A stretch of 32,000 nucleotides of DNA. It comes from Wallemia ichthyophaga EXF-994 (Eukaryota; Fungi; Basidiomycota). Positions 3 through 10,568 of the stretch are shown here, one piece after another. The notes under the pieces are model-generated. The model saw only the letters and a program-made list of their open reading frames with translations, ran no database searches and was not told the DNA's origin. How positions within the stretch are numbered: position 1 is the stretch's first letter; every line of letters starts with the position of its first letter. Made by a program: the position numbers and the translations under genes. The stretch is taken from assembly GCF_000400465.1 (NCBI RefSeq), contig NW_008806293.1, positions 152,601-184,600 of the forward strand, in the 5' to 3' direction.

Positions 3-1912
3 ATGGGAATCACCCCCCAGCTGGCCGGTCAGAGGGTGGAGCTATCGCAAAAGCAGGTCGTCGAGATGGATTTGGCTAAATTGGCTGGAGAGGTGGAAGC
101 GTCGGTCAAGACGAGCAAGTCTGAAGCCAGCACGAGCGGGTGTGCGAGTGTGATTGGTAGTGCAAACAAAAGCAAACAGTCAAACAACGGCGTGGGCAAG
201 TTTTTCCCTAAATCCATCAGTTCGCGCCGCAGTGATAACCAGATAATCAGTGGTATTGAAAAGGCTAATAACCGCAGACTCGACAGTCAGCGCGTCGAAA
301 TGGGCAGCCGTTTAAAAGATGCTCACACCAAGATGCGCGACGCCGACCTCATCGACATCATTGAGAGAAACAGCATGGGGAGAATGGTGCAACAGGAAAG
401 TCAGTTTAGTGAGGCCAGCAAGCTGCGCCAGGGAAATAATCCGCGCTCTAGCAGAGGTATGTGGATTTTTTTTTTGTCTTTGACACATCTTTCTAACACT
501 CTGTTAGACTCCAACGACTCGCAAACACATAGTATGGTATCGCACCAAGCATACCTCGCAGAGCACAACATAAATGTTGGTAATGTGTTAGTGCAGTTCA
601 AAACTCAACTGCATGGCCAATCCAGGGAGCTTGAAGTAGAGATAGACGAGCAGGACAGAGACACCGCGGTGTTGAAAAACCTATCCAGCTACAACGTCCG
701 CTTGAACCTGCCTACGGGAGTGGTGTGGCCGCAACACAGGACGGCAAAGCTGGTAGAAAAAGACCTCTTCGAGTTCAACCTGCAAGTGACTCATCAGTCA
801 AGGAAGTCACTTACAACGCCAGCGGTAGAGCCGCCATCATACCCATTTAGTGCTGTTGACTTTGCCGTGACCAGACCGTCCAGCTTTTGCTGCGCTAAAT
901 GCGGTCGAGACCTTAGCAGCGGGGAGCTTATCCACAATTACAGAGATCTCCCGTCAGACAATTGGTCTGAGCATGTCGACAACTGGATGTGTCACCCTGC
1001 GCAGGAACTTAACGCGGATTACTACCGTACTTCGCTCAGCGACGCAGCTAGTCCCGATGAGGCCCTCATCGGCAGCAATTATTGGGTCTTCCATAAGAAA
1101 AACATGGTGGAGAGGAGTTTAAAAGTGGAAAGTAATGTGAGTATGGATTCTTGATGTCCCGAAACGGGCGGCCAAGAAGGCCAAGCGGGGCTGTCTCAGA
1201 CACATCCTACCTCGCCTGTTGTCGATACAGCCGCCCAATAGTAATACCCTCGCTGAATACCCGCGGCGTCTCGAGATCCATGTCACGCTGCGGCTACATA
1301 GAGGGGGACATCTGAATGTTTTACTAGAGACATTAACTGACCAACCCCTAAAGGAGCAACAAATAGAGCCGACCCTGAAGTGTGTCTGTGGCAGCACCGT
1401 GGGTAGTGTGCAGGGCGAGGCCTTCTTTCGCCTCAGCAAGGTGGCCGTGAGGCCCATTGCACAGGGCACTGCGTAGGTTTGTTGTGTATGTGTGACTCAT
1501 CTAACACCCGCATAGCTACCACCGCTATAACATCGGCCACTACATCTCCGCAGAGCTTGTCGACCAGTCGCGCAACTATGGCAGCTACCGCTACTTCCTA
1601 CAGGATGAGGATAGTGGTGAACTGAGGCTGCTGGTGTGGCTTTTCAACCCTCTCGTCCGACTGCGCACATCGCAGCTCAGCCTAAATGCCACTGTCGACG
1701 CGTGCAAATTATTCTGGAAGACGAGCAAGGAGGAGCCCTTCCACGACAATCGAATGGGCAAGATACCGAGACTGTCGTACCCTGGTTGGATCCTCGATGA
1801 GTTCGAGAAGTTGCTCATGCACGGCATCGCCTCCTTTCTCGCTGATTCTCCAAGACGTTTCTTCTCCGATTGGCATATAGGATATATCGAGCGCGTGGGC
1901 GTGCCTAAATAA
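3..1912 (+). CDS. IPA1: HECT_2-domain protein (UBE3D/Ipa1 family), 5'-partial, with an unexplained in-frame N-terminal region; exons <1-456, 508-1136, 1354-1472, 1516-1912
   Basis: Motifs CAKC...YRDLPSDNWSEHVDNWMCHP, LKCVCGSTVG and RYFLQDEDSGELRLLVWLFNP are typical of HECT_2/UBE3D. Introns are 457-507 (GTATGT..CTAAC..TAG), 1137-1353 (GTGAGT..CTGAC..AAG) and 1473-1515 (GTAGGT..CTAAC..TAG), and all preserve the frame. The HECT_2 part begins near ATG 534. Confidence 0.85.
1166..1313 (+). ncRNA. Intronic H/ACA box snoRNA/scaRNA-like guide RNA (snR81-like; predicted U2 snRNA pseudouridylation guide)
   Basis: Hairpin 1 has lower stem GGGCGGC 1166-1172 / GCCGCCC 1230-1236 and upper stem GCGGGG 1185-1190 / CCTCGC 1210-1215. 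The H box ATAGTA is at 1238-1243. Hairpin 2 has lower stem CCCTC 1247-1251 / GAGGG 1301-1305 and upper stem CCGCGGCGT 1261-1269 / ACGCTGCGG 1285-1293. ACA is at 1308-1310, followed by 3 nt. Both pockets lie 14 nt from their box. Confidence 0.88.
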
Positions 1913-2465: not shown

Positions 2466-5400
2466 ATGAGCCCTTCTGAGGATAAGAATGAGTGCGTCAT
2501 CTAAAAGCAATACCGTTCTACTTAACCCCCACCTCACAGCGTCGTTCTTGACCCGATCACACTGCACAACGTAATCGCACCAGACACAACGGCGGAGGAG
2601 TACGACTATGTGATGCACAAACTAAGCGGTAAGGATAGTGTAGCTGAAGACAAGCTCATCACAAAGCCATTCCCACCTACGCACTCGAGCCAGGAATTCA
2701 TACGCATCCACCTCCCGACGTTTATCAAGGAATTTGGTGTATACGCAGCCATTCTCTCACTTATACCCCTTCCTATACCCATCATTATCTCCCTTACAGC
2801 TGCTCTCCTTTGGCGTATTTGGATTCATATCGACAACGAAGCTGACAAGCTGGCGTACGAGCAGGAACGCCAGCGCACACTCGAAAGCAAAGCAAGCGTC
2901 GGCGGTGTCCAGGAGAGCTGCAACTGGATGAACCAGATCCTCAATAGAGTTTGGGGGATCATCAACCCTGACCTTTTCACTCTCGGTATCGATTTACTCG
3001 AAGACACAATGGAGTCCATGCTGCCGTCGTTCATGATGGGCTTTGTGAACGGCGTTAAGGTGAGCGATATCGATCAGGGCACTGTTCCGATGCGCGTACT
3101 CTCCATGCGCGATCTCTCAGACGCCGAGATGATGGAGACGCTCAACAACAACTCTGTCCCAAGTTTCAGTGATCAGGAGAATTCCTCCAAGAAAGACCTA
3201 AGACCTGACGAAGAGAAGGGCGAGTACGTCAATCTCGAAATTAACTTCGCTTATCGGGCCAGACCGTCTGGAGATCTAGCCACCAAGTCGCGCAACATAC
3301 ATATGCTCATACACTTTGTAGTAGGACTGAAAAAGATGCTCGGGGCTGTCATGCCCGTGTATGTCGAGGTGCAGGGTATGACAGGGACTTTGAGGGCGCG
3401 CTGTCAGCTCGTACCTAACCCGCCCTTTATCAAGAACACAACTATCGCTTTCATGGGTCTGCCCAAGGTCGTCATCAGCGCCACACCCCTAACTAAACAC
3501 TTCCTCAATGCCATGAAACTTCCCCTCGTGTCTCAGTTCATCAACAGCAGTATCAATGAGGCAATGAGAGATTTCTGCGCTCCAAAATCCTATACTGTTG
3601 ATGTGCAGGATCTGCTTTTGGAGGACGACGTTAAGAGGGATGTCTCGGCAATTGGCGTAATTGAGGTGCGCATACATGGCGCTATCGACATTGAAAAGAG
3701 CGATACAAATGGGACGTCTGATCCTTACTGCACGATCGCTTTCAGTAAGCAGCAGAAACCGCTGTATTCGACGAGAGTCATTGTAAATGATCTCAACCCT
3801 ACGTGGGAGGAGTCGACAACTATATTGCTACGTCCTGAAATTATCAAGTCGCAAGAAGATATAACAGTGCAGCTATATGACTCTGATAGGCTTTCAGCGT
3901 AGGTTTTTATAGCCATGAAAGGCGTGAGCGCATATCTCACACTCCAAACAGCGACGACCGTCTCGGCGAAGCCACAATGAGCATAACGAAGCTTGTCAGA
4001 AACGCTGGCAAGATGTACGAGTTGAATAGCGAGCTAGCCGGACAAGTCCACGGTACTAGACGCCAGGGTACACTCTCGTGGACCGTTGCATTTCATCCAA
4101 AGCGCGACCTCAATAAGAGTCTCATGACGGCAGGTACTGATCCCAACGTACCTGAGGACATAGCCAAGCATTACAGGGAGGAGTTCGGAGATGCCCAGAT
4201 AGACAATGAGAATAGACTGGTACAGCGCATCAAGCCAGAAACGCAATTCCCATCTGGAATTCTCTCTGTACAGATACACTCCATCGCGCAGCTGGAAGTG
4301 AAGAACGTTTTGGGGACATTCGGCACAGACGCCAAGCGCAGTGGTGCAGCTGGACAGAGTTACGTGGAGACTGAGGATGAACAATCAACTACTGCTCCTA
4401 GCAGCTACTGCACCATTATTGTCAATGATCAGACTGTCTTCCGGACGCGCAAAAAACCTTTCGCTTTCAACCCCGTCTTCAACGCTGGCACGGAGAGATT
4501 TATTGCTGATTGGAGGAGTACGATGCTTTGCGTGGCCATATACGACACGCGTTATAGAGAGGAGGACCCTATTCTTGGTGTCATACCTCTCAAGCTGTCT
4601 GAGGTGCTCAAAAATGGTTGTCAATTGACAAACAGTTATCCACTGATTGGTGGCCTAGGTGAGTGTTGTTGTATGCTATCTTACGACATCCTAACCTAAT
4701 CACCACCCAGGATACGGACGTGTGCGTCTCAGTGTGCTCTTCAGAAGCTGCGATATGCAATTAGAACGGCCTTTGCTGGGATGGGAGATTGGTACTGTAC
4801 AACTGCACTCCAACATAACTGTCAAATTCGACGCAGGCAAGCATTCCAGCTACTCAAAATGCATCATCCGCACTATCTCCTCAGAAGTGAAACTGCGCAA
4901 GCGCAAGACGACAGCATCCGAGACTGTAGTGTGGAAAGTGGAGGCCGACGAACCGCCAATGCGACTACCTGTAAAGCGCCGCTATGCGAGTGCATTCAGG
5001 GTGGAGTTCTACACCCACAACACAAATGCTCTCAATAGTGGTCCTGCAGCCGTGGCAATAATATGGCTGCGCGATATCGTCGATAATGAGATGCTGCGCA
5101 ATTTCCGTATGACACTTTGGGATGGTAAGGATTTCCACCGTCTCCTGCAGTGCTATACATATAATGAAGAAGATGCTGAGAAGTTGGGTCTTAAGAGGAT
5201 CGGCCATATAGAGCTCGATTTGCGTTACAAATCAGGTCTTGGTAAGACACATGGTCATTTCAAGGGTAATAAGGAGAGCATGGATGTACTCCAGGCATGG
5301 GAGGCAGCTGTTAGCTCAGGGCAGCGCAGCACGGTGGGTGACTTTATTGGCGAGTATACAGACGTGGATAGAAATAGAGATCCTGCTAGTAGAGCTGTCA

Positions 5401-10352: not shown

Positions 10353-10354
10353 GA

Positions 10355-10445
10355 AGGAGATAATGGGGTTCGAACCCATGACTTCCGCGGGTAACATTGT
10401 TGAAACGCTGTGAACACGGCGCTCTAACCACTGAGCTATATCTCC
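10355..10445 (-). tRNA. tRNA-Val(CAC) with an 18-nt intron after position 37
   Basis: Minus-strand cloverleaf: acceptor GGAGATA/TATCTCC, D stem GCTC/GAGC, anticodon stem CCGTG/CGCGG, spliced loop TT-CAC-A|C, variable loop AAGTC, T arm ATGGG-TTCGAAC-CCCAT, and N73 = U. Confidence 0.9.
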
Positions 10446-10568
10446 TGTGAAAGAGGAGGTGATTCAAAATAAACAGTATCGCCTAAATTGCAAAACGACG
10501 AAATCAACCGAAATACGGCGATTTTTATATAAAGAAAGGCACATGATACGATGCAAAAAATGAGATTT

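Follow-up and report, generated by a model that had tools for sequence, protein, structure and literature searches.

Why a fungal gene with otherwise short introns should carry one of 217 nucleotides (nt) is the question raised by the first part of a 32,000-nt stretch of the Wallemia ichthyophaga EXF-994 genome (the window; all coordinates are positions in it unless a contig is named, and U2 positions follow yeast numbering). The gene encodes a HECT_2 protein of the UBE3D/Ipa1 type, and the intron in question occupies positions 1137-1353 of the forward strand; by comparison, the other two introns of the gene measure only 51 nt (457-507, in frame) and 43 nt (1473-1515). We are confident that the long intron houses a real, conserved box H/ACA RNA. 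From its complementarity to U2 small nuclear RNA we further propose that this RNA, predicted at 1166-1313, likely serves as the guide for pseudouridine (Psi) 42 of U2. In this function it would be an analogue of the yeast guide snR81 and the vertebrate guide SCARNA4.

The segment 1137-1353 is an intron, and its splicing restores the HECT_2 reading frame. The exons upstream (1-1136) lead into it in frame 3, with the last codon complete at 1136, and reading on in that frame meets a stop after five codons. When 1136 is joined to 1354 and 1473-1515 is removed, the 372-residue product matches Pfam HECT_2 (PF09814, UBE3D/Ipa1 family) over residues 11-343 (E 6.8e-44). The intron opens with a GTGAGT donor and closes with an AAG acceptor, preceded by a CTGAC branch site at 1337-1341; an alternative acceptor at 1356 is likewise in frame. 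Downstream, the host gene continues in two exons (1354-1472 and 1516-1912). A first-pass annotation of this DNA, made from the sequence alone, had placed a 217-nt intron here within an IPA1/UBE3D gene: the donor, branch site, acceptor and frame restoration bear out the intron, and the Pfam match bears out the identity of the host.

Within this intron, the minimum free energy (MFE) fold of 1160-1316 consists of a hairpin, a hinge, a second hairpin and a tail. The predicted mature RNA of about 148 nt (1166-1313), delimited by the fold, the block of conservation and covariation, begins with a 5' hairpin (1166-1236) whose lower stem joins GGGCGGC (1166-1172) to GCCGCCC (1230-1236), and whose upper stem (1179-1190 with 1210-1223) is capped by a variable apical loop (1191-1209). 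Between these stems lie the two strands of the 5' pocket, CAAGAA (1173-1178) and GATACA (1224-1229), and an H box of the ANANNA type, ATAGTA (1238-1243), follows 14 nt after G1224. The 3' hairpin (1247-1305) has a lower stem of CCCTC (1247-1251) and GAGGG (1301-1305), an upper stem of nine pairs (1261-1269 with 1285-1293) and an apical loop at 1270-1284. Its pocket strands are GCTGAATAC (1252-1260) and CTACATA (1294-1300), which read GCUGAAUAC and CUACAUA as RNA. The ACA box (1308-1310) is followed by a 3-nt tail, TCT. Both hairpins are supported alike by the MFE fold, RNAalifold and covariation, and in both a distance of 14 nt separates the start of the pocket's 3' strand from the box that follows (H or ACA), which falls within the rule of 15 +/- 1 nt from pocket to box (PMC5733568). 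The hairpin-H box-hairpin-ACA layout, the strands of the 5' pocket and their 14-nt spacing from the H box had all been described in the first-pass annotation, and every coordinate held when we re-checked the sequence and the fold.

The orthologous introns provide the comparative evidence. Querying protein databases with the host exons recovered close relatives only (identity of 69% or more), all in SRA or ENA assemblies, from which seven full introns could be aligned (L001, L009, L002, L010, L011, L012 and the window itself); an eighth, in L003, is partial because it runs into the contig end. All eight occupy the same exon junction in sense orientation and represent at least four distinct lineages, and the intron measures 220-240 nt at that junction in the six complete relatives. 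One of these, L002, derives from a banknote metagenome (SRR5256705), which fits a dust-borne Wallemia. Sequence has drifted in the flanks of the intron and in the two apical loops, while a conserved block extends from the lower stem of the 5' hairpin to 3 nt past the ACA box. Over 34 modelled pairs in the seven-sequence alignment (A4), 96.6% of cells are paired, against 42-58% in a control in which the partners were slid by one to three columns. Both sides have changed in a compensatory manner at nine pairs, and the observed values were reached by none of 500 shuffles. The two helices of the 5' hairpin are 100% paired and include compensatory C-G to U-A changes, while the 3' hairpin contributes three compensatory pairs in its upper stem (C-G to U-A) and four in its lower stem; RNAalifold recovers the same four helices independently. 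The earlier suggestion that the stems be compared across orthologous introns for compensatory changes has therefore been answered by conserved stems with nine doubly changed pairs. The pocket strands, in turn, are invariant in every copy except that C1253, in GCTGAATAC of the 3' pocket, is T in one clade. Of the 5' pocket, CAAGAA is identical in eight sequences and GATACA in seven, and CTACATA of the 3' pocket is likewise invariant. The unpaired guide sequence is thus more constrained than the helices that present it, a pattern characteristic of RNAs that guide modification.

Which RNA the 5' pocket may guide was addressed by scanning every U of yeast U2 nt 31-126, using the sequence given in PMC4712673. 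The best site is U42, where GAUAC is complementary to G37-C41 and AAGAA to U44-U48, giving 5 + 5 Watson-Crick pairs around an unpaired U42-G43, and the next-best site in this part of U2 reaches only five pairs in total. This agrees with the first-pass annotation, which had proposed 5 + 5 pairing around U42 at canonical spacing and is borne out by yeast U2. As a control we used 1.14 Mb of sequence from 120 eukaryotic ribosomal DNA (rDNA) loci, collected from a GTDB-based genome collection by means of an exact 30-mer specific to eukaryotic large-subunit (LSU) ribosomal RNA (rRNA); no perfect 5 + 5 site for the pocket occurs in it on either strand. Among random 5 + 5 pockets, only 3 in 200,000 fit any U of U2 nt 31-60. 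Work in yeast indicates what such a pocket can do. The 5' pocket of snR81 makes Psi42 of yeast U2 (PMC4931107), and it still does so when cut to 5 + 5 or 4 + 4 pairs, with a minimum of 8 bp (PMC6049503); SCARNA4 and the SCARNA15 RNAs of Xenopus and C. elegans, foreign guides with a comparable pocket, restore Psi42 in snr81-delta yeast (PMC5733568). The bipartite complementarity of 10 bp described here exceeds the 8-bp minimum (PMC6049503) and leaves the U-N dinucleotide unpaired.

Several observations weigh against the identification of this RNA as an H/ACA guide for U2, and are best considered together. The folding-energy z-score is weak (-1.64), and a single-sequence fold is no proof by itself; the case for a structure beyond chance therefore rests on the orthologue comparison. 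When both strands of 1100-1400 were compared with all 4227 Rfam families by cmscan, nothing matched even at E <= 10. The boxes are not uniformly canonical either. The H boxes of the orthologues include ACATTA and AGAGCA as well as the imperfect AAAGTG and ACAGTG, so that the box ends in G (AnAnnG) in L001 and L009. ACA is kept in the window, L001, L009 and L012, and AAA replaces it in L002 (L002:5784-5786), L010 and L011 at an identical 14-nt spacing. The AAA box is either an ANA variant that is tolerated or a first sign of decay. Compensatory changes within that clade (L011 versus L002) argue that its copies are still under selection. The predicted duplex with U2 amounts to merely 10 pairs and is AU-rich, and the target is an assumed one: we take the U2 of Wallemia to carry GUAUCUGUUCUU from near-universal conservation. 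The GUAGUAUCUGUUCUU segment of U2 is near-universally conserved. Finally, a look-alike sequence in LSU rRNA, GAGTTATC[TT]TTCTTCTTAAC, pairs 4 + 5 with the 5' pocket, as do its variants. Such a site lies at L033:6276-6298 and in seven other rDNA loci, and could be a secondary or rival substrate.

This look-alike gives rise to one alternative, namely that an H/ACA guide RNA is indeed encoded here but its 5' pocket mainly serves the GUUAUC-UU-UUCUU site of LSU rRNA, or some other RNA, with the match to U2 as a by-product of similar sequence. Nine pairs do exceed the 8-bp minimum (PMC6049503). U2 nevertheless pairs better, with all 5 + 5 positions in Watson-Crick geometry. The look-alike adjoins an expansion segment, and we know of no mapped pseudouridine at this site in yeast, although the pocket of yeast snR81 is similar. 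The U2 site, by contrast, is H/ACA-guided in yeast, worms, flies and vertebrates (PMC5733568, PMC4931107), and we consider it unlikely that rRNA, or another RNA, is the principal substrate. An alternative of a different kind would make the conserved structure a cis-acting element of the intron, affecting splicing or expression of the host, and not a stable RNA that acts in trans. Such an element would account for its constant position in this one intron of the host gene, and one clade does lack a canonical ACA. It would not account for single-stranded pockets that are more conserved than the stems, for H and ACA/AAA boxes at an exact 14-nt spacing in both hairpins, or for conservation that stops 3 nt past the ACA; nor is there a reason why a cis element should imitate a pair of pseudouridylation pockets, one of them a perfect fit to U2. 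We therefore regard a role purely in cis as very unlikely.

It could also be argued that the segment is coding sequence, or that its likeness to an H/ACA RNA arose by chance, since frame 1 is open throughout the segment and prokaryote-style gene calling continues into it from exon 1 (proteins P0001 and P0002). Exon 1, however, is read in frame 3 and reaches a stop five codons into the segment, the insertions and deletions among orthologues are not multiples of three, the changes come in compensating pairs, and splicing at 1137/1353 restores the full HECT_2 match. Frame analysis, the restored HECT_2 match and covariation refute this reading, and we hold it to be extremely improbable. Gene calls of this type recur among the relatives: they run from the HECT_2 exon into the RNA-bearing intron at L001:1024-1749, L002:5001-5735 and L012:331-1173, adding 20-80 spurious residues to the database proteins P0001, P0002 and P0011.

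An intronic H/ACA RNA that guides Psi42 of U2 thus remains the preferred interpretation, and it suggests how the RNA might be made and act. The RNA would probably be released from the spliced and debranched host intron by exonucleolytic trimming, and would be protected from further degradation by assembly with Cbf5, Nhp2, Nop10 and Gar1 into a ribonucleoprotein. Its 5' pocket would then pair with G37-C41 and U44-U48 of U2 and direct modification of U42, performing the same job at the same site as the 5' pocket of yeast snR81 and as metazoan SCARNA4 and SCARNA15.

The role of the 3' pocket is less readily assigned. Under strict or relaxed rules it has no convincing site in the 120 eukaryotic rDNA loci, where its best matches require several G-U pairs and mismatches or fall in spacers, and it has no canonical site in yeast U2 nt 31-126. 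Psi1051 of 25S rRNA, the target of the corresponding pocket in snR81, was rejected because no adequate pairing was found in the same rDNA loci. U35, U38 and U40 of U2 were rejected as well, as one arm fails in both the canonical and the 3-nt-unpaired configuration. The 3' pocket is nevertheless as well conserved and as well spaced as its 5' counterpart, and for this reason it is probably functional too. Its 3' strand can pair with U2 nt 32-37 (five Watson-Crick pairs and one G-U) and its 5' strand with U2 nt 49-53/54, so that both arms would flank the site of the 5' pocket in canonical orientation, with 11 nt unpaired instead of 2. This arm match, which was noticed post hoc, is equalled by about 2% of composition-matched shuffles. 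It is conceivable, though we find it doubtful, that the RNA is a double guide devoted wholly to U2, a fungal counterpart of the small Cajal body-specific RNAs (scaRNAs), in which the 5' pocket would direct Psi42 and the 3' pocket would adopt a non-canonical large-loop configuration, either clamping U2 or guiding modification of the U38 equivalent. In this scenario, the RNA could be related, in diverged form, to the SCARNA15 triple guide of metazoans, and guides for the U2 branch-site region would have arisen as early as the opisthokont ancestor. The apical loop of the 3' hairpin (1270-1284) carries an invariant CTC-N-AG...TGTC framework in seven sequences (as CGAG, CTAG or CAAG) with variable intervening bases. 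The invariant AG recalls the Cajal body (CAB) box, ugAG, of metazoan scaRNAs; in the orthologue alignment the 5' apical loop is without an invariant AG.

Comparison with known guides places the candidate among RNAs of similar function and differing history. Yeast snR81 is likewise a two-hairpin H/ACA RNA whose 5' pocket engages U42-G43 of U2 with the same geometry (PMC4931107, PMC6049503). However, snR81 is an independent gene, whereas the Wallemia RNA is intronic in all eight contigs; the 3' pocket of snR81 guides 25S Psi1051, whereas that of Wallemia fits no rRNA site in the scanned rDNA set; and the two RNAs have no detectable similarity in sequence or by covariance model. Vertebrate SCARNA4 (ACA26) is also an H/ACA guide for U2 Psi41, equivalent to yeast 42 (PMC5733568), but it belongs to the Cajal-body scaRNAs, carries CAB boxes and directs its other pocket at Psi39 of U2, and the Wallemia RNA finds no match to it in Rfam. 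SCARNA15 (ACA45) of non-eutherian vertebrates, C50C3.14 of C. elegans and scaRNA:PsiU2-38.40.42 of Drosophila also use their 5' pocket to guide the U42 equivalent (PMC5733568). In guides of this type, the 3' pocket uses its 3' strand to pair with GUGUAG, upstream of U38 (PMC5733568), and CUACAU of Wallemia is similarly complementary to U2 nt 32-37. Unlike in the SCARNA15 type, the U2 sequence immediately 3' of U38 or U40 is not complementary to the 5' strand of the Wallemia 3' pocket, which precludes the canonical and 3-nt-unpaired configurations, and Rfam gives no match here either. The pugU2-43/44 RNA of S. pombe (SPNCRNA.1709) was also found by complementarity (PMC5473140); it differs in targeting Psi43/44, in using its 3' pocket and in lying downstream of RPC10 and not within an intron.

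Given the lack of an Rfam match, the intronic location and the differing second pocket, we do not claim membership of the snR81 or SCARNA families; the evidence supports the status of a functional analogue of snR81/SCARNA4 rather than of a demonstrated orthologue. The first-pass annotation had called the RNA snR81-like, which remains apt for its proposed function as a U2 guide, given the complementarity and the position of the guide in the 5' hairpin; as a statement of orthology it does not hold, because Rfam gives no match and the 3' pocket misses the 25S site. An extensive, homology-based survey of fungal small nucleolar RNAs (snoRNAs) traced snR81 (Rfam snR81; family HACA_26) only within Saccharomyces, and reported that Wallemia sebi had 'lost' 92% of H/ACA families (PMC5824354). 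Our results indicate that Wallemia retains at least one canonical and strongly constrained H/ACA guide that is invisible to homology searches. They also suggest that RNA-guided formation of Psi42 in U2 has probably been maintained in basidiomycetes, so part of the apparent loss of H/ACA RNAs would be an artefact of detection. The locus provides a concrete example of an intron-encoded fungal guide with a well-conserved orphan 3' pocket. It also serves as a flag for open reading frame (ORF) callers that read into an RNA gene.

Other searches for relatives or descriptions of the RNA added little. None of the papers searched describes Wallemia snoRNAs. At gathering thresholds, Rfam reported only a tRNA across the window and L001-L004, and none of its models at the RNA locus. 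A guide-element pattern (GTCGATACA...TGAATAC...CTACATA) had four matches in JGI metagenome contigs, which were set aside as chance occurrences without H/ACA structure. No eukaryotic LSU rDNA turned up in viral contigs when these were scanned for it. In the GTDB-based collection, the eukaryotic LSU 30-mer lies in at least 120 contigs (L013-L132) that are filed as bacterial species or metagenome-assembled genomes, including Streptomyces, Planomonospora and Saccharibacteria bins. Several of these contigs hold complete fungal-type 18S-5.8S-25S units, which points to eukaryotic contamination of those assemblies.

The host gene itself probably begins upstream of the window. Its HECT_2 match starts near Met-534, yet the host frame is open from base 3 of the window and through the intron at 457-507; residues just before Met-534 are conserved in L001 (protein P0001), where the Met itself is a Val. 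The open frame and these conserved residues therefore suggest a long N-terminal extension without a Pfam match. Elsewhere in the window, ARAGORN called a selenocysteine tRNA (anticodon TCA) at 10353-10446 on the reverse strand, which we rejected. This segment scores 59.8 bits against the general Rfam tRNA model, in an alignment that places a 20-nt insertion behind the anticodon loop, and visual inspection identifies it as a tRNA-Val(CAC) whose intron is at the canonical position. The assignment of this DNA to a basidiomycete, made earlier from the sequence, is confirmed by the ORF at 3977-4696 (+), which shares a 90%-identity cluster with a Wallemia ichthyophaga 'Meiotically up-regulated protein' (e.g. 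XP_009269945.1) and so assigns the window to Wallemia, in the Wallemiomycetes. Further genes of the window are also fungal, among them a Mug190-like SMP/C2 protein, an AMPK beta subunit, a RabGAP and a mitochondrial DNA polymerase.

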